This document shows, in pieces, positions 20,202-48,990 of a stretch of DNA of 64,000 nucleotides. The position numbers were made by a program, and so were the translations under genes. Under the pieces are notes generated by a model, which was not told the origin of the DNA, did not search any database, and saw only the letters and a program-made list of their open reading frames with translations. Positions within the stretch are counted from its first letter, which is position 1. Each line of letters starts with the position of its first letter. Origin of the DNA: Thalia democratica (taxonomy: Eukaryota); NCBI GenBank assembly GCA_965202585.1, contig OZ241834.1, positions 23,498,001 through 23,562,000 on the forward strand, given 5' to 3'.

Positions 20202-21044
20202 ATGAGTAATATTAAAGAACTGTTTTCTAAGTTGCCAAGAATAAAGCTGTCCAACTTGCGTCCGAAAGTCCCTGAACCAATCAAGAGGCGAGAGAAGCCG
20301 ATCAGGGGAAGGGAGAGGCCGCGCCCCAACATAAAACCAAGGATCGGCTTCGCTTTCGACAGGATCCCCTTTCAAAAGAAGATCCCCAAGTACGGCTACT
20401 ACAGGGACCAGCACTTGAAGCGCCAGTACTTCCCCTTCACCCTGTGGCAGCTGCAGAACATGATCGACCTGGGCAGGATAGACCCCGACCAGCCCATTGA
20501 CCTCAACGCCATCGCCAACAGCAGAGTCTTGAAGATGCTGCCGAGCGAAAACAACTACGCTGGCGTCTACCTGCTCTCTCAGGGCTCCAACTGCTTCCAG
20601 GCCAAAGTTAACATCGAGGTACAGATCGCGGACGACCTGGCCATTGCGGCCGTTGAAAAGGCGGGAGGGGTCATTTCCACTACTTTCTACGACAGGGTGA
20701 GCTTCGAAGAGCTGGTCGATCCGGTCAGCACCTTCATGAAGGGCCAGCCGATAAGAAAGCGCCTGCTGCCGCCCGAAGAGCTCATCTCTTACTACACGGA
20801 TCCGAAGAAGAGGGGGTACTTGAGCGATCCGGCGCTCGTTGACGAGGAGCGTTTGAGAACGTCGGCGCAGTACGGGTACGAGCTGCCTGACATTAGCAAG
20901 GATGAGAGTTACGAGATGCTGATCGAGAAGAAGGACCCGCGCCAGATCTACTACGGACTGATGCCAGGATCATTGGTAAACTTGTACGATCGAACCGTCA
21001 TAAAACCCAATGAGGACTACGTGCAGGAACACTTGAAGGCTTAA
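20202..21044 (+). CDS. MRPL15: Mitochondrial large-subunit ribosomal protein uL15m, intronless CDS, 280 aa
   Basis: LPRIKLSNLRP, IPKYG, LQNMIDLGRIDPDQPIDL, KVNIEVQ.A..LAIAAVEK.GGV, GQPI.KRLLPPEELI.YYTDPK.RGYL.DP and KDPRQI.YGL.PG match MRPL15 over the full length. Confidence 0.95.
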   Translation: MSNIKELFSKLPRIKLSNLRPKVPEPIKRREKPIRGRERPRPNIKPRIGFAFDRIPFQKKIPKYGYYRDQHLKRQYFPFTLWQLQNMIDLGRIDPDQPIDLNAIANSRVLKMLPSENNYAGVYLLSQGSNCFQAKVNIEVQIADDLAIAAVEKAGGVISTTFYDRVSFEELVDPVSTFMKGQPIRKRLLPPEELISYYTDPKKRGYLSDPALVDEERLRTSAQYGYELPDISKDESYEMLIEKKDPRQIYYGLMPGSLVNLYDRTVIKPNEDYVQEHLKA

Positions 21045-21284: not shown

Positions 21285-22583
21285 ATGGCGATCAAAGAAA
21301 AAATTGAAAACAAAGAAAAGAAGGAAAAACTTGCAAAAGGCAAGAAACTCAAGAAGAAAAAATCTATGGATTCTGATAAAGCCGTTGCTGAAGATGTAGT
21401 GACACCACAGAAGAAAGTTAAAAAAAGTAAAAAGGAAAAGAAAGTAAAATCTACACCTTCAGAAAAATCTAAGGATCAAAGTGTCACTGAAGTAGAAGTA
21501 ATGCCTAAAGAGGAAAAAATTAAAAAAAGTAAAAAGAAAAGTAAATCTGAACCTTCAGAAAGTTCTGAGGATAAAAGTGCAACTCAAGTAGAAGAGCTGC
21601 CTACAGAGAAGAAGGTTAAAAAGAGTAAAAAGAAAAGTAAGTCTACAACTTCAGAAGATGCTGAACTTCCTTCAGAAACTGCGAATGAAGACGCATCACA
21701 AACTGAGGTCAAGAAAAAGAAGAAAAGCAAAAAGAGGGTTTCTGATGCACTAGAACCGGTCGTTGAAAGCTCAGATAACAAGGACTCTAACGCGTCCGTG
21801 TCAAAAGTGAATCATGTCACACCAAAAAAAGAAACAAGCTCAAAAGCTTCCTCTCCCAAACCAAAAGCTGCTTCTGAAAACAAAGAGGCGAAAACTGCTG
21901 TTGCCAAGAAAGAAGAAGCCAAGGGCATGGACGTCGAAGAAGTGAAGGAGCTGCTTTCGAAGGGCAGGCACGATAAGAACCAGATGAAGAAGAAGCGCAA
22001 GAGGAAGCGGAAACTCCACCTTCCGGAGCCACAGCCGGGCGCGTTTGACGCGCTTCTGCACGAAAAAGAAGAGGAACCCGAAGTGGACGAGTCCAAAGTT
22101 GAAGAGGTGGAGATACAAGAAGAAGAGCCGCCGGTGAAAAAGGCAAAGAAGAGCCTGAAGAGGAACGCCACTAAGGAAATCAAGCCGGTCGACCTGAAGG
22201 CCGTGTTCGCTTTGGACGCGAAAAAAATAGACAAGGAAGGAGGGATCCACGAGGACGCGTTCGCGGACGGGGAAGCCGAAGAAGAAGTCGGACCTTCAGA
22301 CCACCCGGCCATCCAGTACCTGAAGGAGTGGAAGAAGGACCGCGCCAACTTCAAGTTCAGGAAGGTGAGGCAGCAGTGGCTGATGCGGAACATGTACGAC
22401 GACGAGAAGGTTAATAACAAGGAGTTCGATCTGCTGGTGGAGTACCTGCAGATGGCGAAGGGGAGGGTGATCAGCAGGGCGGTGGAGGAGGCGGAGAAGT
22501 TCATCGCGGAGGAGGAGGACGTGAAGAAGTGGAAGGTGAAGATCAACCGGATGAGGAAAATCGTGCAGAACATTGTGGAGTAA
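21285..22583 (+). CDS. C7orf50: C7orf50-like nucleolar protein (WKF/DUF2373 domain) with a long K/E/S-rich N-terminus, 432 aa
   Basis: The C-terminal AIQYLKEWKKDRANFKFRKVRQQWLMRNMYDDEKVNNKEFDLLVEYLQMAKGR matches the WKF-domain pattern (YL..W......WKF.K.RQ.WL....yd...v....F..ll.YL). Confidence 0.8.
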   Translation: MAIKEKIENKEKKEKLAKGKKLKKKKSMDSDKAVAEDVVTPQKKVKKSKKEKKVKSTPSEKSKDQSVTEVEVMPKEEKIKKSKKKSKSEPSESSEDKSATQVEELPTEKKVKKSKKKSKSTTSEDAELPSETANEDASQTEVKKKKKSKKRVSDALEPVVESSDNKDSNASVSKVNHVTPKKETSSKASSPKPKAASENKEAKTAVAKKEEAKGMDVEEVKELLSKGRHDKNQMKKKRKRKRKLHLPEPQPGAFDALLHEKEEEPEVDESKVEEVEIQEEEPPVKKAKKSLKRNATKEIKPVDLKAVFALDAKKIDKEGGIHEDAFADGEAEEEVGPSDHPAIQYLKEWKKDRANFKFRKVRQQWLMRNMYDDEKVNNKEFDLLVEYLQMAKGRVISRAVEEAEKFIAEEEDVKKWKVKINRMRKIVQNIVE

Positions 22584-29276: not shown

Positions 29277-30980
29277 AATGCTAGATGGGATAATTCTTAT
29301 AATAACATTCATAAAAAGTTTTTCATATATAGTATATTCCGAAGAAAGTTGTTTCATAAGCTTTATTTAAGTTTCGTGTTTTTTAAAAGGAATTTAGTAG
29401 CCGAAACTAAAACACAAAATTTCTTTTTACACACAGTTTACTTGTTCCTAATGACTTAAGGGCACTAGTTTATAAAAAAATGATTAAGAGTTTTTAATAC
29501 TAAAATAAATTTATAATCTTTAGTAATATAATTCTACAATTCGTGTCAGTATTTCTTGTTTAGCAAACAAATTTTTGTTTTTCACAAACATTGTGGTATT
29601 TAAGTTTCGGCTACATTCACTTTCCTTACATAAATATTTTAAAAACGAAAGTAATAAGTATCTGTTTTAATGAAAGTAATTTCAAAGCTAAAACGACATT
29701 TAAAACAAGCAAATAGTAAACTACTAGTACTGATCAACTACGATACTAGCAGGTCCACGACAAAGCTAAAGTTATTGTTTTATGGAGAGTAAATCTAAAA
29801 CTGTAAATACATGTACTTACAAAATATACTTTAATAAACAATGTAAGTTTGATAAACTAATAAATGTTATGTAAAAAATATCAAACAAGTACTTTTTTTT
29901 GTTTCCTTAGCTGAAAAAGTTATACTTTTTAGTTACGTGAGTTAATAAAATGTTCAACTAAACATTGGATTATTTTGTTTATGTTTTAATTTAATTTAAT
30001 TCATTTTAAATTAAACAATTAAGATTAAACTTCAGCCTAAACTTTAACAAAGTTTGTAAATGGCAAACATATATAAGTTGCCAATATTTTAAAATTTATT
30101 CTTTTATTTAATTTAAACACATTGAAAGCGTGCAATAGTGCTACAAGCTTGAATAAAAGCTTTTGAAATCAAAAATTAAAGTTTTCACAAAAAGTGTTTT
30201 TCTACTAATTTTTATTTTGGTAATAAACAACATAAAAACTTTAATGGTTTCAAAGTTTGCTTTAAAGTTAGACATTTTTGGCAGGCTGCAGCTTTTAAAA
30301 TTTAAACCCAACAAATAAAAAAAACATACAAACAATTTGATTACGAAATATTTTAAACACTTTAGGTCTACCAATATAAACTAGATGTATAAATATGATA
30401 AATATGAGTTTTTTATTGCGATCATTGATTCATGCACGAGACATATTGTAAACTAATTAAAGTAAAATTATCAAATTGTTTTATTACTAATTATGATAAA
30501 ATGAGCAAAACCTTATAAATCCGCAGCAACCACTAAAACGGCGTGTATATACATAAAAATTTGAATATAAAACAAGAGTCGCCATGTGGAATCGGTTTAG
30601 ATACGACTTCATGTAACAACTATATAATGCTGTATTTTCTCTTGAGCCTGTATGAATAAATATTCAACTACAGCCAACAACACAAATGGGACTTGAACAT
30701 TTTGGCTGATGAAAAAGTATTTTAAAGCCTATTTCCACTTATTATTTTATCTTTATGCTATGTTTGTTTGATGTTTTGAATTTTTACCCAGACTCAAAAA
30801 ATAAATCGTTTCCCAGAAGCTAAAGATAACTTATTTCAAATATTAGTTCATTTCGCCAAACAATCATTAAATTTACGCTTTATTAATATACATATAGCAT
30901 TATAAAACTAAACATAATTATATAACTAAGTATTTTCATTTTGTCTTATTTTTATTGAGTGTTATATACACATCATTCTA

Positions 30981-33900
30981 CTAGTAGCACAACATGTTGT
31001 GGGTGCCCTTGTTGCTTCTCGGGTTCATCACCTTGCCCTCGTTCTTCGTGAACATGTCTAACAGAGCGTAACAGTTGTTGCGCATGTCTACCGCTAGGAT
31101 GCGCAGTTGCACAAACTCCTTCTCGTCCAGTTCCTCCAATGCGCGCGAGTAGTCCAGAACTCCCGGGTACTTGGACAGTCTGGACATCATTTCGGCCCTG
31201 GAAGATTAATAAAATGCTTGACTAAAAAGTTTTTGATTAGAATATCGAAAAAACCTCTCGTAAAACTATTTTTTAGAATATTTTTTTTCAAATTGTTTAA
31301 TGCAGTTCTTGTTTACTTTACTACAAAGCATTTAATAAAAGTTTATAGAAAATGTTTGTTTATACTATCAAATCACAGATATGTATCTCCGATTTTCTAA
31401 ACATAACTGTACAGAACGTCGACGAAGTTTTAAAACAACAATTAAGTTTAGAAACATTTGCTTAACATCGAAAATCAAAAAACCAATAGTTCGCATCACA
31501 TTACATCACAAATACAAAAAAAAAACAGATATTCATTTTATAAAAACCAAATAGTTTCCAATTTTGCTTACAGTTGTTTAAACGCTTAAAGGCAACATCT
31601 AAGCAAATAAAGTTTCATTAGCAACATTTTATAAGAGTTTATAAAAGCACATATTATAACGTATCAAATAGATAGAATAGTATAGTCATTACAATAAAAA
31701 CACATAGAAATACAGTGTATTCACTCACCAGGTCAGGTAGTATGAAAGAAATTAAAAAAAACAAAAGTTTTTATTGCAGTACAAACACATGCAAAATAGA
31801 ATATCAACTGTCACCTGGTCAAGTGGTATATGGAGAGGGCCTGCATGCTGGCACTGGACTCCGTTTCCAGCCTCTTCACCATCTCTATTATCTCGTTCTG
31901 CACCTGGACCCCGAAATTGTTCCCATCCTGCATCTCGGGTATCAGGAGTTTCAACCAAGTCCTCACGGTAAGGCAGCTCTCCAGGATTTCAACCAATAAA
32001 GGTTTCAGGTTCTCCTCCATTCGGCCTATTATCGGGTTGACCTTAAAAAAATTTTTTTTGACAAGATATACACCGATTAAGTTGCTAATATATTTCATCT
32101 GTATGTTTGTACAACATTGTATCGAGTCGACTTCCAAGAAATGAAAAATTGTAGTAATTTGAAAGGATACACGTTTTTTATACTTTTGATATTTAATATG
32201 AAAATTCAAAATAATTCATTTTTGTAGTTTTAAAATAGTGCACTTATTTATCTTCAAACTTTTGACATGATGTAAATAAAAGTGTCAAAAATAGAAAAAA
32301 ATCAAACGCAGACCTGGAGCTGGTTGATGGCGTTGCTTATCTCGATTTGCGCCTTCTTCACCTCTTGGTCGCCACCATGTGGCACCTGCTCGTCATCCGA
32401 ATCGTCATCGCTGTCGCAAGCAGGCGCTGCGCGTCCGGAGGAAGACGTCGAAGACACTTGACCCTGGTGGTTTGATTATTGCGATTAGGAAAAAAAGAAG
32501 CAAATGTTGGGCGTTTTCCTAACCGGATGGGTGTCACAAATGCACGGAAAGTCACTTTTTCACGAACCGATGTTTTTGTAATTAAAAAATTCCAAATTTA
32601 AAATGAACTAGTAATTTTTTCTTATTGGAAAACCACGTTTTAAAGAAAAATTCTTAAATGACAAAAAAAACTTAATTAGAACATTCGAACCTCGTGCATT
32701 TGCGACCCGTGCTCGTCCTCATCATAAGTAACTATGAGATGTTTAGATATTTGTTAATTAGTTTCTCATTTTATTCTTAAGTTGTTTGTAAACTTATCTC
32801 AGTATCTATTGCATTTAAATCATGTTTAAAGCTAGTAAAGGAATTATATAAACTATTTTTATATAAAAAATTGTATAATATAAAACAGCTTATAGTATGA
32901 GAGATTGAAAATTAATTGTATATTATAAAATTAAAAATTTTATAGTATAATTTATTTCAGTACTTAAACTTTACTTAAACAACGAATACTCAACCGTAGC
33001 AAACAAAGTTCATTACTTAAGCAACTCTGTGAATAAAAAATAATGTCCAGGCTTTGATGCTAAATACCTTGCTAGAGTCTATTGTTTTTATTATTGATAA
33101 GTAAATAAAAAAGTTTATTTTGTACTACAAACTCCTTCAATTTTTCTTTTTTTAGTTCCACGTGTTGTCACCGACCCGACACTCATTGCGTCTTCTTGTT
33201 TTATTTTTCTGTTTTTTCTTTTTATTTGCTCGTTCCTGGCAGCGACCAAAATCAGCTTTTTATCCATCAAACTAAAAATAAATAAAAAACTGAAACTTTT
33301 GTTGTTAAATAGTTTTGTTAGTTATCATAAAGCTGTTACTACAGAAAACGTTGTTGTTTTAAGTAAAAATACCAAAATCAAATAGACTTTATGCTTTGGT
33401 TTAGTTAGTAAGTGCTACCTAAAAAAACTAATTAGTTCTTTTCAAAAGTTGGTTTAATTAAAAGATTTGGTTGAATGGAAAGTTTTTGATTTTATCTATT
33501 TTGTTCATTTTTAGAATTAAAACAAGGCAGTATTGTATTTTACAATAGCTTGAAGCTAAAACAAATCGACTTAGGTAAAAATATTGGTCATAAACGATAC
33601 TAACTGTTACAAAAACAATAGACTCATTACTTTATGCAGTTGATTTTAAAAATATCAAATTAAAATAACATGAATAAAGTTGCTTTAAAAAAAAATAATG
33701 ACCGTTGAGGAGTTGAGCTTTTTTAAGTATTAAATTGAAAATAATAAAAATAATTAAAAAATTTGATGTTTTTCTCTTTAACAAACGTTAAAATAAATGA
33801 AAAAGTGTAAGCAGATTTCAAAATAATAAACATAGCACAAACGTTTTGAATCCGTCTTTAACGGCTTGAGTGGCGGCCTTCTTGGAGTTCCTGTTGAACT

Positions 33901-34006
33901 CTTCCAACATGAGCATCTTGTCGAAGCCGTGGCACACCGACGGAATGACGACTTTCAAAACGTCGGGAGCTTCCTTGTGGAGTCTGTCTTGGTATTTTGA
34001 TGCCAT
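30981..34006 (-). CDS. PSME3: Proteasome activator PA28/REG (PSME3-like), six exons, ~313 aa
   Basis: Exons 34006-33843, 33271-33129 (or to 33133), 32731-32691, 32463-32314, 32041-31815 and 31197-30981. PA28-beta domain: LKPLLVEILESCLTVRTWLKLLIPEMQDGNNFGVQVQ...YHLTRAEMMSRLSKYPGVLDY...LDEKEF..LR..D.RN. An NLS-like KKRKIE lies in the linker. The paralogue assignment is tentative. Confidence 0.88.
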
Positions 34007-39671: not shown

Positions 39672-42600
39672 ATGTCAGATCAGAACAACTACAGCTACTT
39701 GGGATCCTACAACAGCCTGAAGGATCCCCATCTCAAGGGCTTCTTCAGCAGCCCTCCCATAAGAAGACACCTGAGGAGAAAGGGGTTGATCACAAGGAAG
39801 GGAGCAATCGTCTCCGAAAAAGTCAGTTTTTTTCTTGGTATCAGTTCATTAAATTAAAAATAAAATTAACAATCAACGCAATGTGATGTAAACTTATATA
39901 GTTTTTTTTTTTTTGAATCTAATGAGTCTAAAACTAGAGTCAATCTCAGCAGGAAAGTTTGAAAATAGTTGTTTAAAACTTAGTCACTTAACTTAAGAAG
40001 TATTAAACTGTAAAATATCACTTTACTTTTTATAACATGTTTGAAACTGTTTTATAACATGTAAATTAAAACGTATTTTAAAGATGATTTACAAACCTTT
40101 TTAACATGAACTTTACTCATAAATTAGTTTTCGCAGGACTTCTACCTTCGAAACGCGCAGAAGGACCACCGCAAGCATGTGCAGGACGCGTTGGCGCAGG
40201 CCATCGTGGACAAGACGCTGGACATGGAGCGGCAGGCGCACTTCAAGAGGCAGCAGGAGCGCGAGAGGAGGTACAAGCAGCAACTGGTGGCCGCCATCAA
40301 GAACAGCAGAAACCAGCCCAGGGACGAGAACGGTGAATAAACAAAAAAAAATAAGATAAATTAAATATCTGACTGTTGACGAAATAAAAATTATTGATAA
40401 ACTTTTGCTTTAAAGTGTTTTACAAAAATAAACAAAATTTTATTAGTTCTACCCCTGCTCATGCCCAAACCGCCAAGCGGAAAGAGGGGCGGCAAGTCGA
40501 GAGGAGGGCAGAAGAAGCAGCCGATGAACGAGAGGGTATTGAAGAGCCCCATGGCGGTTTCGGTGCGGAACTCGATGAAGCTGCACAGGAGGGAACCCCC
40601 CATGATAAAACCGGCGCTGAACAAGTCGCTGGGCAGCATCACTTTCAGGTAGGAAAATGATATGAATAATAAATTGATTAATGTTATTATGAATTAAATG
40701 CATTAAAAATTTTAGTTTTCTATTTAGAATTTAAGGCAGTCACATGTATTTACATTAATCAAAAAGTAAGCCAGCATTGTTAAAGAATCGCTTTATATTA
40801 CCTAAACTCATTTTTTTCGAAATTAAACCTATACAAACAACACTCTCAGTCTTTCCACTAGTTATGAATTTGTTTTGATAGGTTGCGCTTATATTAGTTT
40901 TTTTTTCTTAAACTAAAAATTTTTCCCAGGTACCTCGGCCCGCTAATCAAGCTCGACTACGAGAAGGAGGACCCGCGCGACGACATCACCATCATGCAGC
41001 AGCACAACGGCGGGGAAAACCTGTGCGTCTACCACGGCAAGCACCAGCCGGGCGAGGAGTTCACCGTGACGTCACAACGGCACTCGGGATTCCCCTTTTC
41101 AATAACTCTGTACGTGAACAACATGAAGGCAGACAGGTTGAGCGCCTGCTGCGAGTACAAGCACAAGCCGAAGCGGAAGCTGGGCCAGTTCAAGTTCGTC
41201 AGGGTGACGGGGGCGCACCCGTGCTACAAGTGCATGATGGTGCAGAGGCGCAAGCAGCTGAAGAAAAACAAGAAGGAGGCGCAGCAGCAGCAGAAGGCGC
41301 ACACGCCCGTGCCGCCCCGGAAGCTGTCGCCCATAAAGTTCGAGAACTCGTCGGTGGGAGGTGAGAGCAGCTCGGAGGGGGAGAGCGTCTCCTCGTTCTC
41401 GGCGGTTTCGAAGGGGGGCGAGAACAAAGCTTCGAGGCCGACGTCGAAGGCGTCTTCCAAGAGGAGGTCGAGAAGGTCGTCGAGGAAGGCGTCGGCGGCT
41501 TCGTCTAAGAAGTCTGCGGGATCGGCAAAGGAAGAAAAGGAGGTTGCAGAGAAAGTTTCGTCGGAAAAGGAAGCGAAGGAATCTTCGTCAAGCTCGAGCG
41601 ATTCGGAAGCTGAAAACGATTCTGTTAAAGTTGCTGAAAGCGTGGAAGTAAAAGGAGAGACTGTAGAAGTAAAAACAGAAGAAGTTGTTGCTGTAGAAAC
41701 AAAATCAAGAAAATCTTCATCATCCAGTTCAAGTGATTCAGAGACTGAAAAGGAATCTATCAAAGATATTGTAAAAGCTGAAGAACTTAAAGAGCAATCT
41801 TCAGAAATTAAAGATGAAACAGGAGAAGTCGCAGCAATCGAAACAAAATCAAGAAAGTCTTCCTCCTCATCAAGCTCAAGTGACTCAGTAAGTGAGAAAG
41901 TCGTCACAGAAGCCGAAGAAATTAAAGAAGAAGCAGCAGAAGTAGAAGTAGAAGCAAAAGAAGTTGTTGCTGATGAAACAAAATCAAGAAAGTCTTCATC
42001 TTCAAGTTCAAGCGATTCAGAAACTGAAAAATACTCTACAAAAGTCGTATCGGAAACAGAAGAGATAAAAGAAGCAATAGAAGATGTTGCAGCAGCTGAA
42101 ACAAAGTCTTCAAAATCGTCGTCTTCAAGCGATTCGGAATCTGAAAAAGAATTTGTTACAGTGGTTACAAAATCTGCATCAGTCAAAGAAGAGACTGCAG
42201 AAATTAAAGAAGAAGTTAAGGAAGTTGTAGCTGTTGAAACAAAATCAAGAAAGTCTTCATCATCATCTTCAAGCTCACGTAACTCAGAAACTGAAAAAGA
42301 ATCTGTTACAGTGTTTACAGAATCTGCATCAGTTAAAGAAAAGGCTGAAGAAATTAAAGAAGAAGTTAAAGAAGTTGTAGCTGTTGAAACAAAATCAAGA
42401 AAGTCTTCTTCTTCAAGCTCAAGCAACTCAGAAACTGAAAAAGAGTCTGTTACAATTGTCACAACATCTGCATCAAATAAAGAAGAGACTGAAGAAATAA
42501 AAGAAGTTGTAGGTGTTGAAACAAAATCAAGAAAGTCTTCTTCTTCAAGCTCAAGCGATTCAGAAACTGAAAAAGAATCTGTCAAAGTTGCTGCAGAAAC

Positions 42601-45600
42601 TGTAGCAGTTAAAGAAGAAACTGTAGAAGTAAAAGTAGATGAAGTTGTTGCTATTGAAACAAAATCAAGAAAGTCTTCTTCTTCAAGCTCAAGCGACTCA
42701 GAAACTGAAAAAGAATCTGTCAAAGTTGTAGCAGAAACTGTAGCCGTTAAAGAAGAAACTGTAGAAGTAAAAGCAGAAGAAATTGTTACTGTTGAAACAA
42801 AATCAAGAAAGTCTTCTTCTTCAAGCTCAAGCGATTCAGAAACTGAAAAAGAATCTGTCAAAGTTGTAGCAGAAGCTGTAGAAGTTAAAACAGAGACTGT
42901 AGAAGTAAAAGCAGAAGAAATTGTTGCTGTTGAAACAAAATCAAGAAAGTCTTCTTCTTCAAGCTCTAGCTCAAGCGATTCAGAAACTGAAAAAGAATCT
43001 GTCAAAGCTGTAGCAGAAACTGTAGCAGTTAAAACAGAGACTGTAGAAGTAAAAGCAGAAGAAATTGTTACTGTTGAAACAAAATCAAGAAAGTCTTCTT
43101 CTTCAAGCTCAAGCGACTCAGAAACTGAAAAAGAATCTGTCAAAGTTGTAGAACAAGGTGTAGTCGTTAAAGAAGAGACTACAGAAGTAAAAACAGAAGA
43201 AGTTGTTGCTGTTGAAACAAAATCAAGAAAATCTTCATCATCTAGCTCAAGCGACTCAGAAACTGAAAAGGAATCTGTCAAAGTTGCTGCAGAAACTGTA
43301 GCAATTAAAGAAGAAACTGTAGAAGTAAAAGTAGATGAAGTTGTTGCTATTGAAACAAAATCAAGAAAGTCTTCTTCTTCAAGCTCTAGCTCAAGAGACT
43401 CAGAAACTGAAAAGGAATCTGTCAAAGTTGCTGCAGAAACTGTAGCAGTTAAAGAAGAAACTGTAGAAGTAAAAGTAGATGAAGTTGTTGCTATTGAAAC
43501 AAAATCAAGAAAGTCTTCTTCTTCAAGCTCTAGCTCAAGCGACTCAGAAACTGAAAAAGAATCTGTCAAAGTTGTTGCAGAAACTGTAGAAAATAAAGAA
43601 GAGACTGCAGAAGTAAAAACAGAAGAAGTTGTTGCTGTTGAAACAAAATCAAGAAAGTCTTCATCTTCAAGCTCAAGTAACTCAGAATCTGAAAAAGAAT
43701 CTGTCAAAGTTGTAGCAGAAACTGTAGAAGTTAAAACAGAGACTGTAGAAGTAAAAGCAGAAGAAATTGTTACTGTTGAAACAAAATCAAGAAAGTCTTC
43801 ATCTTCAAGCTCAAGCGACTCAGAAACTAAAAAAGAATCTGTCAAAGTTGTAGCAGAAGCTGTAGCCATTAAAGAAGAAACTGTAGAAGTAAAAGCAGAA
43901 GAAGTTGTTGCTGTTGAAACAAAATCAAGAAAGTCTTCTTCTTCAAGCTCTAGCTCAAGCGACTCAGAAACTGAAAAAGAATCTGTTAAAGTTGTTGCTG
44001 TAGCTGCAGCAGTTAAAGAAGAGACTGCAGAAATAAAAACAGAAGAAGTTTTAACTGTTGAAACAAAATCAAGAAAGTCTTCATCATCTAGCTCAAGCGA
44101 TTTAGAAACAGAAAAAGAATCTGTCAAAGTTGTAGCAGAACCTGTAGAAGTTAAAACAGAGACTGTAGAAGTAAAAGCAGAAGAAATTGTTGCTGTAAAA
44201 ACAAAATCAAGAAAGTCTTCTTCTTCAAGCTCAAGCGACTCAGAAACTGAAAAAGAATCTGTCAAAGTTGTAGCAGAAGCTGTAGAAGTTAAAACAGAAA
44301 CTGTAGAAGTAAAAGCAGAAGAAATTGTTGCTGTTGAAACAAAATCAAGAAAGTCTTCATCTTCAAGCTCAAGCGATTCAGAAACAGAAAAGGATTCTGT
44401 CAAAGTTGTAACAGAAACTGTAGAAGTTAAAACAGAGACTGTAGAAGTAAAAGCAAAAGAAATTGTTGCTGTTGAAACAAAATCAAGAAAGTCTTCATCT
44501 TCAAGCTCAAGCGATTCAGAAACAGAAAAGGATTCTGTCAAAGTTGTAGCAGAAACTGTAGAAGTTAAAACAGAGACTGTAGAAGTAAAAGCAGAAGAAG
44601 TTTTTGCTGTTGAAACAAAATCAAGAAAGTCTTCATCTTCAAGCTCAAGCGACTCAGAAACTGAAAAAGAATCTGTCAAAGTTGTAGCAGAAGCTGTAGA
44701 AGTTAAAACAGAAACTGTAGAAGTAAAAGCAGAAGAAATTGTTGCTGTTGAAACAAAATCAAGAAAGTCTTCTTCTTCAAGCTCAAGCGATTCAGAAACA
44801 GAAAAGGAATCTGTCAAAGTTGTAGCAGAAACTGTAGAAGTTAAAACAGAGACTGTAGAAGTAAAAGCAGAAGAAATTGTTGCTATTGAAACAAAATCAA
44901 GAAAGTCTTCTTCTTCAAGCTCAAGCGATTCAGAAACAGAAAAGGAATCTGTCAAAGTTGTAGCAGAAACTGTAGAAGTTAAAACAGAGACTGTAGAAGT
45001 AAAAGCAGAAGAAATTGTTGCTATTGAAACAAAATCAAGAAAGTCTTCATCTTCAAGCTCAAGCGACTCAGAAACTGAAAAAGAATCTGTCAAAGTTGTA
45101 GCAGAAGCTGTAGAAGTTAAAGTAAAAACTGCAGAAGTAAAAGCAGAAGAAATTGTTGGTGTTGAAACAAAATCAAGAAAGTCTTCATCTTCTAGCTCAA
45201 GCGATTCAGAAACAGAAAAGGAATCTGTCAAAGTTGTTGCAAAAACTGTAGATGTTAAAACAGAGACTGTAGAAGTAAAAGCAGAAGAAATTGTTGCTGT
45301 AGAAACAAAATCAAGAAAGTCTTCTTCTTCAAGCTCAAGCGACTCAGAAACTGAAAAAGAATCTGTTAAAGTTGTAGCAGAAACTGTAGAAAATAAAGAA
45401 GAGACTGTAGAAGTAAAAGCAGAAGAAGTTGTTGCTGTTGAAACAAAATCAAGAAAGTCTTCATCTTCTAGCTCAAGCGATTCAGAAACTGAAAAAGAAT
45501 CTGTTAAAGTTGTTGATGTAGCTGCAGCAGTTAAAGAAGAGACTACAGAAATAAAAACAGAAGAAGTTGTTGCTGTTGAAACAAAATCAAGAAAGTCTTC

Positions 45601-47938
45601 TTCTTCAAGCTCAAGCGATACAGAAACAGAAAAAGAATCTGTCAAAGTTGTAGCAGAAGCTGTAGAAGTTAAAGTAGAAACTGCAGAAGTAAAAACAGAA
45701 GAAATTGTTGCGGTCGAAACAAAATCAAGAAAGTCTTCTTCTTCAAGCTCAAGCTCAAGCGACTCAGAAACTGAAAAAGAATCTGTTAAAGTTGTTGCTG
45801 TAGCTGCAGCAGTTAAAGAAGAAACTGTAGAAGTAAAAGCAGAAGAAATTGTTGCTATTGAAACAAAATCAAGAAAGTCTTCTTCTTCAAGCTCAAGCGA
45901 TTCAGAAACTGAAAAAGAATCTGTCAAAGTTGTAGCAGAAGCTGTAGAAGTTAAAACAGAGACTGTAGAAGTAAAAGCAGAAGAAGTTGTTGCTGTTGAA
46001 ACAAAATCAAGAAAGTCTTCTTCTTCAAGCTCTAGCTCAAGCGATTCAGAAACTGAAAAAGAATCTGTCAAAGCTGTAGCAGAAACTGTAGAAGTTAAAG
46101 AAGAAACTGTAGAAGTAAAAGCAGAAGAAATTGTTGCTGTTGAAACAAAATCAAGAAAGTCTTCTTCTTCAAGCTCAAGCGATACAGAAACAGAAAAAGA
46201 ATCTGTCAAAGTTGTAGCAGAAGCTGTAGAAGTTAAAGTAGAAACTGCAGAAGTAAAAACAGAAGAAATTGTTGCGGTTGAAACAAAATCAAGAAAGTCT
46301 TCTTCATCAAGCTCAAGCTCAAGCGACTCAGAAACTGAAAAAGAATCTGTTAAAGTTGTTGCTGTAGCTGCAGCAGTTAAAGAAGAAACTGTAGAAGTAA
46401 AAGCAGAAGAAATTGTTGCTATTGAAACAAAATCAAGAAAGTCTTCTTCTTCAAGCTCAAGCGATTCAGAAACTGAAAAAGAATCTGTCAAAGTTGTAGT
46501 AGAAGCTGTAGCAGTTAAAACAGAGACTGTAGAAGTAAAAGCAGAAGAAATTGTTGCTGTTGAAACAAAATCAAGAAAGTCTTCTTCTTCAAGCTCTAGC
46601 TCAAGCGATTCAGAAACTGAAAAAGAATCTGTCAAAGCTGTAGCAGAAACTGTAGAAGTTAAAGAAGAAACTGTAGAAGTAAAAGCAGAAGAAATTGTTG
46701 CTGTTGAAACAAAATCAAGAAAGTCTTCATCTTCAAGCTCAAGCGATTCAGAAACAGAAAAGGATTCTGTCAAAGTTGTAGCAGAACCTGTAGAAGTTAA
46801 AACAGAGACTGTAGAAGTAAAAGCAGAAGAAATTGTTACTGTTGAAACAAAATCAAGAAAGTCTTCATCTTCAAGCTCAAGCGATTCAGAAACAGAAAAA
46901 GAATCTGTCAAAGTTGTAGCAGAAACTGTAGAAGTTAAAGGAGAGACTGTAGAAGTAAAAGCAGAAGAAATTGTTGCTGTAGAAACAAAATCAAGAAAGT
47001 CTTCTTCTTCAAGCTCCAGCTCAAGTGATTCAGAAACTGAAAAAGAAACTGCTAAAGCTGACGAAACAAAAGAAGAGGCGACGGAAAACACAATTAACAC
47101 TTCTAACGACAATTCCATACTAGACGAAATAAAAGACAGAAGTGTTATAGACCTACAGTACTACAACTTAGAACAGTACCATATCGACGAACTAAACACC
47201 TATTTAGTATCGAGCAACGACTCAATTGAAAGCTTGCTTCTAAGAGGCTGCTCGCTGGGCCACGACGCCGTCAAAAGCATCCTGAAGTCGCTGATCACCA
47301 GCAAGAGAAAGCTTGAAACGCTCAACGTCGCCACCAACGACCTCGGCGAGAGCTCCGTCAACTACGTCCTGCAGGCTGTCAGGAGCTGCGAGATAAAACA
47401 CCTGGTCATGGACGGCAACCCCCTGGCGGACAGGGGAACCAAGCTGCTCATGCGCGGCCTCGCCAAGCAGTGCATCAGCGAGAAGGCCAAAAACTCCGAC
47501 CTCAGCTCCATCTCGTCCAGCAGCGACGAGAGCAAGAAGGACGATGACGTCACCGAAGAAAGCAGCCAATTGGAAAGCTTGTCCCTGGACGCCACCGAGA
47601 TTGACGTCAAAGGGCTCAAGAACATCATCGCCTTTTTGAGCCTCAACCCGCCGCTGAAGTCGCTCAGCCTGAACGAGAACGAGAACCTCAGCGACAAGTT
47701 GCGCCTCCTGTGGAAGGTCTTCGCCAAAAAGAGGAACGTCAGCCTCAAGTTCATCTCCCTCAGCGGCAACAAGATGCTCAACGAGGACCTGGACTCTTTC
47801 TTCGAGCTGATGGACTTCAAGTCGAGCATATCCTCGATCTGCCTGACAAACAACGAGTTTGAGGAGAGCGTTTTGCAGAAACTGTCGGAGTTCGCGGCTA
47901 AGAATGGCATCAGTCTGAACGCTAACACGAACGAGTAA
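39672..47938 (+). CDS. ERICH3: ERICH3-like protein (N-terminal ERICH3 region and DUF4590) with a 46-aa repeat array and C-terminal RNI-like LRR domain, four coding exons, ~2518 aa
   Basis: Exons 39672-39821, 40137-40332, 40447-40648 and 40930-47938 are in phase. YNSLKDPHLKGFFSSPPIRRHLRRKGLITRKGAIVSEK, AQAIVDKTLDMER and QQHNGGENLCVYHG...SQRHSGFPFSITLYVN...RLSACCEYKH...FVRVTGAHPCYKC match ERICH3. LRR motifs include LLLRGCSLG, LNVATNDLG, LVMDGNPLAD, LSLNENENL and ISLSGNKM. Confidence 0.9.
41640..47045 (+). repeat. Coding minisatellite, 138/144-bp unit, ~39 copies
   Basis: The unit encodes VAVETKSRKSSSSSSS(SS)DSETEKESVKVVAETVEVKTETVEVKAEEI. The period is 138 nt (e.g. 44761 to 44899), or 144 nt when an extra SS is present. 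Confidence 0.97.
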
Positions 47939-48990
47939 ATTTTATAAAATAACTAGAAATTAGTTTTTACTTGATAGTTTTCTCAAAAACGATTTTTCTG
48001 CGTTTAAAAAAGACATCAAATGTTTTTTTCATATTGCACTGTGACTTTAAACTGCAAATAGTTTTAATATTGCAAAAAGTTATGTAACCAGGTTTCAATA
48101 CGTTTTTACAATCAAATAATGATAATCTCTAATTTCCAGCTTTTTGATGTTATGAACACTTTTAAAATTTCCAAACGACTATCAGTGTTAGCAATTTTTC
48201 CAAAATACTTTTTCATACTAATTTTTTTTTTTTTTAATGAGCGTACAACATTAGCTAATACTTTTTCATATATTTTATTTTTCACCATTTCCTTTCGTGC
48301 AGTATTTTTAGTGCATTCCAGTGCTAACGAGAGCACAACAGCGTACAATAGAAGCATTTTAGCGGGCAAATTGAGTACCACTCGTCTGTGGAGTGTTTTT
48401 CTTTCGATCGGGCTGACCATTGTTACGTAATGACACTCGGTTGCGTCTTAACAATCTTTTTTTTTTGTTGATATCTGGCGGCGCGATAATCTCGGCTGAG
48501 TACCAGCCCACTTATTCATTTCCTACCTAATTTTGTTTTTCTTTGCTTGTTTTTTGTTTTTTCGGTTTACCACTGTTTTATATTTCCTTCCACTGTTGTT
48601 CTGTCGCTATACTCTCGTATAATAAATAGTTTATGCCTTTTGGTTTTGTCAGTAGTTTATTATTTTTATTTTAACACCTTTTTATTGCTTAAGATAATAT
48701 ATATAAAAAAAAATAAGAAATAGGTCAAATTTATATTTAAACCAAAACTAACGAGAAATAATAACAAAGTTACGGCAAACAATCATTTTGCGTAACTATA
48801 TGCAACTCATATTGCATCATAAAAGCTTTGTTTAGCTTGAATTAAAAATGGATTAAAATCCAATTGTTCACTGATGAAAAAATCATTGTAAAAGCACTTT
48901 GAACAAATTTACCAAAAATTTGTACGTGGTTGACACCTAATCTTAACCCAGCCTTATTAAATCAACACAAGTGAGCACAAAGCGACACAA

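Follow-up and report, generated by a model that had tools for sequence, protein, structure and literature searches.

Organization of the Locus

The window analyzed here is a 64,000-nucleotide stretch of the Thalia democratica genome (GenBank assembly GCA_965202585.1, contig OZ241834.1, positions 23,498,001 to 23,562,000 of the forward strand). Between its positions 39672 and 47938, on the forward strand, lies an ERICH3-like gene whose splice sites define 4 exons and a coding sequence of 7,557 nt, specifying a protein of 2,518 aa. The features of the gene, numbered from the first letter of the window, are as follows.

39672-39821, + strand: exon 1, running from the ATG through the conserved ERICH3 N-terminal motif to ...VSEK and a GT donor (sequence, splice sites)
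40137-40332, + strand: exon 2, conserved N-terminal region, with an AG acceptor and a GT donor, ending in phase 1
40447-40648, + strand: exon 3, a basic segment ahead of DUF4590 (splice sites)
40930-47938, + strand: exon 4, 7,009 bp in open frame, with DUF4590, the repeat array, the LRR domain, and the stop codon
40958-41272 (about), + strand: DUF4590 (PF15257), Pfam E 4.5e-37 at 126.9 bits (cut-off 27)
41273-41581, + strand: pre-array stretch, non-repetitive, basic, and Ser-rich, like the short linker of relatives (translation, linker composition)
41582-47051, + strand: tandem array of 138-bp (46-aa) units (Tandem Repeats Finder, unit list, per-column diversity)
47141-47929, + strand: predicted RNI-type LRR domain of 8-9 strand-helix units (AF2 with alignment, Foldseek, phmmer)
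47507-47563, + strand: predicted disordered Ser/Asp-rich loop between LRR 4 and LRR 5
47939-48646, + strand: 3′ UTR, 708 nt, with AATAAA at 48621-48626 and a poly(A) site at about 48646

The gene start at 39672 given by the first-pass annotation is the ATG of exon 1, and the single uninterrupted 7-kb exon that it described as joining DUF4590, the repeats, and the LRRs corresponds to exon 4. Its reading frame has no stop between 40898 and the termination codon at 47936-47938. Comparison of the spliced protein with homologous sequences bears on the smaller upstream exons. Residues 10-120 align without a break with residues 16-126 of protein P0020 (49.6% identity), crossing both junctions of exon 2, and the same region is 48% identical to its counterpart in Haliotis and 59% to that in Littorina; the junction between exons 3 and 4 is crossed by the alignment of residues 152-285 with residues 271-408 of P0020.

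The RNA evidence consists of assembled metatranscriptome contigs, which cover the array at its 3′ end only, and the 5′ splice sites are assigned from homology only. The transcript was found in metatranscriptomes of several samples from two studies, with contigs at 46996-47135, 47018-47154, 47155-47772, 47655-48023, 47994-48153, and 48228-48646. No joints were seen in these contigs over positions 46760-48646, a span that takes in the last repeat, the LRR domain, the stop codon, and the 3′ UTR, and the first of them runs across the array/LRR junction with zero mismatches. Behind position 48646, 20 nt past the AATAAA, a loose end of 18 A is untemplated, the genome having no A run there. The end of the array, the LRR domain, and the 3′ UTR belong to one continuous polyadenylated transcript.

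An antisense ORF of 1,964 aa at 41224-47118 is not counted as a gene, being a by-product of the stop-free repeat frame.

Membership in the ERICH3 Family

The identification of the gene with the ERICH3 family, made when the DNA was first read, is confirmed by a DUF4590 score above the Pfam gathering score, by a collinear N-terminus, and by placement in a phylogenetic tree. The tree places the protein, whose DUF4590 sits on a long branch (0.92), in a clade supported at 98/95 to which Styela clava also belongs. A search of the species' own genome finds DUF4590 at a single locus (127.9 bits), and the LRR domain is likewise present in a single copy. Within the overall explanation preferred below, which is considered probable as a whole, the gene is the single-copy member of the ERICH3/DUF4590 family in a fast-evolving animal, orthologous to the ancestral metazoan “ERICH3-like” protein.

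The C-terminal LRR Domain

The C-terminal region of the protein, 292 aa in length, holds the RNI-type LRRs. Modeling with AF2 on a 27-row alignment (pLDDT 85.2, pTM 0.83), which superseded a run on the lone LRR sequence (pLDDT 39.6), yields 9 strands alternating with 8 helices at a strand-helix period of ~28-29 residues. The top matches of this model in the PDB, as found by Foldseek, are ribonuclease inhibitors (E 2.1e-10, TM 0.70 for 4peq_B), with NLRPs and RanGAP among the other best matches, and the domain is accordingly predicted to have a ribonuclease-inhibitor-type LRR fold. The initial estimate of at least seven RNI-like LRRs within ~290 aa is in keeping with this modeled horseshoe of 8-9 repeats, which is closest to ribonuclease inhibitor. 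A phmmer search with the domain returned 622 matches, mostly in several stretches, and the domain can be aligned with the LRRs of 23 family members. With Pfam alone the LRR would go unseen because the LRR models score under their cut-offs (LRR_6, 11 bits against 23.4; LRR_1, 13.1 against 20.6).

Between LRR 4 and LRR 5, the Ser/Asp-rich loop (model residues 151-167) is assigned a pLDDT below 50. Its position coincides with that of an insertion in relatives, including those of the Styela clade (alignment columns 170-245).

Distribution of the Architecture among Animals

The combination of DUF4590 with an LRR domain had been put forward in the first-pass annotation as a new fusion. A family search shows instead that the architecture is already widespread in invertebrates, with DUF4590 accompanied by LRR_6 or LRR_TMOD-LMOD in Styela, nemerteans, echinoderms, bivalves, gastropods, and cnidarians, and that it is also carried by sharks and frogs; among the best 150 matches to the LRR domain, 8 have DUF4590. 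The LRR-bearing family members are annotated “glutamate-rich protein 3-like.” DUF4590 followed by a Ser/acidic linker and a C-terminal RNI-type LRR is the ordinary ancestral layout, present in many phyla, and most animal phyla, together with sharks and frogs, retain the C-terminal LRR on the ERICH3-like protein. The main claim to novelty is therefore lost: what was taken for a new fusion is the usual, ancestral state of an old animal gene.

The companion statement that vertebrate ERICH3 has no LRR is supported for mammals, other amniotes, and teleosts. The LRR is absent from the one primate ERICH3 tested, which is also the only mammalian one (hhalign probability 0.05%), and a turtle and a teleost ERICH3 have DUF4590 alone by Pfam, the other amniote and teleost entries likewise listing DUF4590 only; the LRR-bearing proteins of sharks and frogs may be orthologues or a paralogue of ERICH3. 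In a single isoform of the ctenophore protein, no LRR was found by hhalign. A search for long orthologues with residues 1-200 of the exon 4 protein, among candidates of 1,285-4,088 aa in a collection that lacks the window's own protein, returned only a 1,373-aa protein from Bolinopsis.

Structure and Growth of the Repeat Array

What sets the Thalia protein apart is its linker, which is 1,937 aa long; ~95% of it is the 46-aa tandem array, and 79% of its 6-mers are repeated. Tandem Repeats Finder reports a period of 138 bp with 35.2 copies and 89% matches at 42125-47051, preceded by degenerate copies from 41582 onward. The array opens with a proto-unit and 6 diverged units at its 5′ end, continues as 32 homogeneous core units (42521-46984), and closes with one truncated unit. 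Counted by TKS[RS]KS anchors (n = 39), the copy number as read in the genome assembly is 38 full units and the truncated one, with the single anchorless proto-unit upstream. Full units are 46 aa long in 26 of the 38 cases and 48 aa in 8, over a range of 41-50 aa. The ~39 repeats of 46 aa first counted at this locus are thus recovered, 46 aa being the commonest length. The composition first given for the unit (a basic patch, a run of 7-9 Ser, acidic DSETEKE, and a V/E/K/T/A-rich segment) agrees exactly with the layout determined here, in which TKSRK is followed by 7-9 Ser, by DSETEKES, and then by a V/E/K/T/A-rich segment built of 7-aa (21-bp) sub-repeats.

At the DNA level, the mean identity between units is 89%. 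An offset scan revealed a near-identical block of 422 bp at an offset of 564 bp, and self-BLAST of the array gave the identity match only. The high DNA identity among units reflects recent amplification or homogenization and can mimic conservation.

The two halves of the unit vary to quite different extents. Amino acid diversity reaches 0.22 in the V/E/K half but only 0.02 in the basic/Ser/acidic one, where several codons are synonymously variable; the TKSRK-S7-9-DSETEKES half is near-invariant in protein despite synonymous variation. Length changes between units involve whole codons (extra Ser-Ser), and the frame is held over 5.4 kb.

The 138-bp unit occurs at its own locus only and was not found elsewhere in the 802-Mb genome. 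Four array units used as a protein query gave no match at E up to 0.001, and an ESM Atlas feature search with the array gave none, each a weak negative given the low-complexity query; no Pfam family was found in an array segment at E up to 1. The linkers of relatives are short, Ser-rich (20-28% Ser), and non-repetitive, with lengths of 163-431 aa in the Styela clade. Tandem amplification of the 138-bp unit has lengthened the linker from the 163-431 aa of these nearest relatives to 1,937 aa. This expansion is lineage-specific, gene-specific, and expressed.

Possible Roles of the Expanded Linker

The explanation that best accounts for the locus, and that is held to be probable, is an ancestral ERICH3-like protein with a lineage-specific, repeat-expanded linker, for which a role as a tether subject to phosphorylation may be proposed. 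The array would form a long, mostly flexible, and highly charged tether between two binding heads, DUF4590 and the LRR domain, which by analogy with mammalian ERICH3 might act in cilia. Putative sites of multiple CK2-type phosphorylation lie in the acidic serine clusters; their phosphorylation would give a polyampholyte of net charge −148 the character of a strong polyanion, making the tether stiffer or more extended. Hundreds of potential phosphosites had been anticipated, and the counts bear this out, with 155 direct S/T-x-x-D/E sites of CK2 type in the array, rising to 400 with n+3 priming, and 40 R-K-S consensus sites. The spacer would on this basis be tuned by phosphorylation, a role that is suggested by sequence motifs.

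The array may instead be a tolerated, essentially neutral minisatellite in a disordered linker where any long charged spacer suffices, with no specific function attached to the motif or to its copy number. This is possible, if on balance unlikely. The nearest relatives manage with repeat-free linkers, no similar repeat emerges from protein searches, and the sharing of the same codons at most positions, together with the mean identity and the offset block described above, has the marks of recent unequal crossing-over. A neutral array is harder to reconcile with a frame intact over its whole length and changed only by whole codons, with a basic/Ser/acidic half that varies synonymously but barely in amino acids while the other half does vary, and with a transcript recovered in several samples and two studies.

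Rather improbable is a structured array, in which heptad-like V/E/K/T segments (ETVEVKx) would serve as β-rich or helical modules between the serine clusters and assemble into a rod or self-associating fiber. The sub-repeats of 7 aa would suit such an arrangement, as would the composition of the array, in which Pro and Gly are almost nil (2 and 6, respectively, in 1,830 aa) and the β-branched residues V, T, and I are plentiful in the second half of the unit. In a charge-hydropathy plot this V/E/K half scores as “folded” (0.523 versus a boundary of 0.471), so disorder need not extend through the whole array. The array as a whole, however, lies on the disordered side (0.421 versus a boundary of 0.442), its fraction of charged residues is 0.39, and nothing in Pfam or the Atlas matches it.

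Very improbable is an artefact of assembly in array length or LRR continuity, or a separate gene for the LRR part: assemblies are prone to collapse or expand tandem arrays, but the units are individually different and the 5′ end of the array is diverged, the array/LRR junction is bridged by an RNA contig without mismatch, loose ends of the contigs match diverged 5′ units, 5.4 kb fits within modern long-read length, and homologues in many phyla share the domain order.

Returning to the preferred reading of an ancestral protein with an expanded linker, a bolder version of it is decidedly doubtful. The array would then be a functional spacer, variable in copy number and switched by phosphorylation, that determines how far DUF4590 and the LRR domain of a ciliary protein can reach from each other, and the ancestral partner-binding module of the family would be the LRR head, which amniote ERICH3 has lost. 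If this were so, nature would have supplied in Thalia a length mutant with which to study the function of the ERICH3 linker.

An expanded linker with a protein-conserved half can serve as a ready-made test of whether the length of the linker and its phosphorylation at multiple sites matter in the ERICH3 family, and the C-terminal LRR in ERICH3-like proteins could offer those studying ERICH3 in cilia a lead to its partners.

Comparison with Known Systems

The closest comparisons are with invertebrate and anamniote “glutamate-rich protein 3-like” proteins, such as those of Styela clava, Haliotis rufescens (XP_048251071), Littorina saxatilis (XP_070209545), Xenopus laevis (XP_041430887), and Mustelus asterias (XP_078083677), which align collinearly with the window's protein and share its order of parts: a conserved N-terminus, DUF4590, a Ser/acidic linker, and an RNI-type LRR at the extreme C-terminus. 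The Ser-rich loop within the LRR is a further feature in common with the relatives of the Styela clade. The difference lies in the linkers, which in these proteins are 163-870 aa long and mostly non-repetitive, whereas that of the window's protein is far longer and repetitive.

Mammalian ERICH3 (C1orf173) has a homologous DUF4590 and N-terminal region and, as here, a long acidic low-complexity part past the domain; unlike the window's protein, it ends in a Glu-rich tail, without the LRR and without the 46-aa array. It is a protein of primary cilia that controls their length, and it was also found to be abundant in the motile-cilia proteome (PMC6848114). In that paper, the only one found on ERICH3 that names DUF4590, the word “leucine” is absent and the protein is drawn with DUF4590 alone; nothing further was found in the literature on LRR-bearing forms of ERICH3.

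The C-terminal domain resembles in its predicted fold the LRRs of ribonuclease inhibitor and the NLRs, from which it differs in having only 8-9 repeats, 15-20% identity, and an internal disordered loop.

Two further systems offer parallels to the array. The PEVK region of titin is made of entropic-spring repeats, short tandem units rich in E, V, and K that lie between folded domains, and the window's array likewise places tandem E/V/K-rich units between folded domains. It shows no detectable homology to PEVK, however, and it has serine clusters and is not Pro-rich, with 2 Pro in 1,830 aa. In Nopp140 (NOLC1) and treacle (TCOF1), acidic serine clusters alternate with basic stretches and are heavily phosphorylated by CK2. 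These proteins provide a different protein context and have no sequence homology to the array, which has no Pfam match and drew empty protein and Atlas searches; its unit adds a V/E/K/T half, and its phosphorylation is predicted only. The likeness is one of pattern, the window's array alternating a basic patch, a serine run, and an acidic patch in an arrangement that fits S-x-x-D/E sites with n+3 priming.

Gene model and C-terminal domain

The region contains a single gene on the + strand, whose four exons are bounded by canonical GT/AG sites in the sequence read around the start proposed in the first-pass annotation.

Exons of the ERICH3-like gene
39672-39821 (+), exon 1, GT/AG splice sites
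40137-40332 (+), exon 2, GT/AG splice sites
40447-40648 (+), exon 3, GT/AG splice sites
40930-47938 (+), exon 4 (last, 7,009 bp), open frame

Joined, the exons give a CDS of 7,557 nt (2,518 codons) with one stop, which is terminal, and in exon 4 the reading frame stays open between 40898 and the stop at 47936-47938. The predicted splice model rests on homology; the protein and its closest full-length relative, P0020 (893 aa), are collinear across all three junctions, with 49.6% identity over residues 10-120 and 58% over residues 152-285. The coding sequence of P0020 (L001 3001-5682, on a 2-Mb contig of an ENA assembly) is one continuous ORF; that of the window's gene is split by three introns toward its 5' end. 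Exon 4 opens with DUF4590, which scores 126.9 bits against a Pfam cut-off of 27, and a six-frame search finds it to be the only such locus in the animal's own 802-Mb assembly.

Other genes in the window
20202-21044 (+), relative of mitochondrial-type ribosomal protein L15 (Ribosomal_L27A, E 1.6e-10)
21285-22583 (+), Lys/Ser/Glu-rich protein with a WKF domain (E 7e-18)
31811-32209 (-), PA28 proteasome activator C-terminal exon (PA28_C, E 4.5e-19)

The first two are intronless ORFs on the same strand about 240 bp apart, a spacing compatible with operon-like pairing in an animal that uses spliced-leader trans-splicing; the PA28 exon is part of a multi-exon minus-strand gene at about 30900-34000.

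On the C-terminal domain, Pfam LRR models score below threshold, and AF2 run on the single sequence, with no alignment, returns a useless model (pLDDT 39.6). The LRR fold is established by four other results. Searched exhaustively with phmmer, 1.84 billion representatives yield 622 matches, the majority to long LRR proteins and in several stretches; its alignment with the C termini of family members follows an RNI-type consensus (LxxLxLxxNxxGDxGxxxLAxxL); AF2 given the family alignment predicts an alternation of nine strands and eight helices, plus a single disordered loop, rich in Ser and Asp, at residues 151-167 (pLDDT 85.2, pTM 0.83); and Foldseek ranks ribonuclease inhibitors first (4peq_B, E 2.1e-10, TM 0.70), followed by NLRP LRRs and RanGAP. 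The count of at least seven RNI-like LRRs made from the sequence alone was correct, and the exon, DUF4590, repeats, and LRR described with it are confirmed in every detail.

Distribution of the architecture

Of the 150 top matches to the LRR domain, eight contain the N-terminal/DUF4590 region as well. Pfam recovers DUF4590 in all eight and LRR_6 above cut-off in seven, the Callorhinchus protein falling just under it (22.4 versus 23.4 bits). The eight come from Haliotis rufescens, Littorina saxatilis, the sharks/chimaera Mustelus asterias and Callorhinchus milii, and the frogs Spea, Hyperolius, and Xenopus laevis, and most are annotated as "glutamate-rich protein 3(-like)." A family search seeded with P0020, counting DUF4590 together with LRR_6 or LRR_TMOD-LMOD, extends the set.

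Taxa with DUF4590 and LRR_6 or LRR_TMOD-LMOD in the P0020-seeded search
Tunicate: Styela clava
Nemerteans: Lineus, Tubulanus
Echinoderms: Asterias, Apostichopus, Diadema, Acanthaster, Anneissia, Antedon
Molluscs: bivalves, gastropods
Cnidarians: Xenia, Actinia, Acropora

Profile comparison confirms the C-terminal LRR of Asterias (99.4%, E 9e-22) and detects none in one primate ERICH3 (0.05%); in turtle and teleost ERICH3, Pfam finds DUF4590 only, with no LRR. The statement that vertebrate ERICH3 lacks an LRR therefore holds for the primate protein, with Pfam in agreement for turtle and teleost. The reading as a novel fusion is not supported, DUF4590-linker-LRR being already present in a tunicate, nemerteans, echinoderms, molluscs, cnidarians, sharks, and frogs, and widespread in invertebrates. 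It is the ancestral, widespread form.

Structure and possible role of the repeat array

Tandem Repeats Finder reports a period of 138 bp in 35.2 copies with 89% matches at 42125-47051, with degenerate copies back to 41582. In the protein, 39 TKS[RS]KS anchors mark 38 full units and one truncated last unit, preceded by one proto-unit with no anchor; 26 of the 38 are 46 aa long, eight are 48 aa, and the rest 41-50 aa. The unit runs from TKSRK through S7-9 and DSETEKES to VKVVAETVEVKTETVEVKAEEIVAVE, the last part being built of 7-aa (21-bp) sub-repeats. Units 1-6 are diverged and the other 32 homogeneous; 25 directly compared 46-aa units average 89% DNA identity, with the same codon at most positions. 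One near-identical 422-bp block, offset by 564 bp, points to recent multi-unit duplication. As all 18 DNA matches to the unit in the genome lie inside 41582-47060 of the window, the array is gene-specific and not a dispersed satellite. An antisense ORF of 1,964 aa through the array (41224-47118, -) owes its existence solely to the lack of stop codons in that frame of the repeat; it is not regarded as a gene.

Within the 32 core units, the basic/serine/acidic half averages an amino-acid diversity of about 0.02, yet several synonymous codons are clearly polymorphic (Ser TCT/TCA, Asp GAT/GAC, Thr ACT/ACA, Lys AAA/AAG); the V/E/K half is reversed, with amino-acid diversity of 0.22 and low synonymous variation. 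Length variants in the array are whole codons (extra Ser-Ser). This pattern is consistent with purifying selection acting on the phospho-cluster motif, with compositional constraint alone on the rest, an argument weakened by gene conversion among units.

The 1,830 aa of the array comprise 23% S, 21% E, 17.5% V, 13% K, and 9% T, with 2 Pro and 4 aromatic residues, a net charge of -148, and a charged-residue fraction of 0.39. Predicted CK2 sites number 155 by the minimal S/T-x-x-D/E pattern and 400 if every phosphoserine is taken to prime the position three residues upstream; R-K-S sites number 40. Our best reading is that the array would serve as a long flexible tether joining two binding heads, in which multi-site phosphorylation would raise the charge and, through it, the extension. 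Rival readings are a functionally neutral expansion and a structured array, beta-rich or helical. By charge-hydropathy, the V/E/K half lies on the ordered side of the line, the serine half plots as clearly disordered, and the whole falls just on the disordered side.

Transcript evidence

Positions 46900-47938 are present in marine metatranscriptome runs from two studies and in runs labelled with two organisms. Four RNA runs supplied contigs, which are assemblies and not single molecules, for placement on 46760-48760.

RNA contigs
46996-47135, array end into linker, no mismatch
47018-47154, array end into linker
47155-47772, LRR
47237-47583, LRR
47655-48023, LRR end, over the stop codon
47994-48153, 3'UTR
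48228-48646, 3'UTR to its end

The contigs tile the whole stretch and show no joints over 46760-48760. The last contig runs on as 18 A's with no genome match; in the genome, AATAAA lies at 48621-48626 and no run of A follows 48646. This tiling, the untemplated A's, and the AATAAA together place the LRR and at least the array end on one polyadenylated mRNA; to that extent, from array end through LRR to poly(A), the proposed single transcript stands. Loose contig ends in the repeat part carry diverged 5' unit sequences, such as a unit encoding ...TIVTTSAS..., which suggests that the entire array is transcribed. It is unlikely that the LRR belongs to a separate gene, the contigs running into it joint-free, or that the array or its continuity is an assembly artefact. 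P0002, a 133-aa metatranscriptome fragment, opens with MINNPEYKGEWK, a stretch that aligns neither to the window's protein nor to the rest of the family, and then passes into the window's LRR; a chimera formed in contig assembly is the probable explanation.

Relation to known family members

In mammals, ERICH3 belongs to primary as well as motile cilia and influences the length of the cilium and retrograde transport (PMC6848114); a ciliary role for the window's protein would be an extrapolation from it. The ancestral LRR head of ERICH3 is absent from that paper, the only one found naming DUF4590. In a tree of the DUF4590 region that is only midpoint-rooted, the shark and frog LRR-bearing proteins (P0051, P0052, P0103, P0068) group in a long-branched clade of their own (100/99), separate from ERICH3 proper; they probably represent a paralogue, and one that may be unstudied and lost in amniotes and teleosts.

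The window's gene lies on a long branch (0.92) within a clade (98/95) that includes Styela clava and nine rows from ENA and Logan assemblies; with the occurrence of the sequence in marine metatranscriptomes, this would fit a pelagic tunicate. Clade members with a detectable LRR have Ser-rich linkers (20-28%) bearing acidic serine clusters, and the P0020 linker contains SSESESSSDSSS...EEEKSV, similar to the serine/acidic core of the unit; from this likeness, we infer that the array may be an amplified piece of the ancestral linker. The family is known but has been little studied, and what stands out here is an expressed expansion of the linker that is specific to this lineage and to this gene: the linker is 1,937 aa long with 79% of its 6-mers repeated, whereas those of the 98/95-clade relatives with a detectable LRR span 163-431 aa and are essentially non-repetitive.
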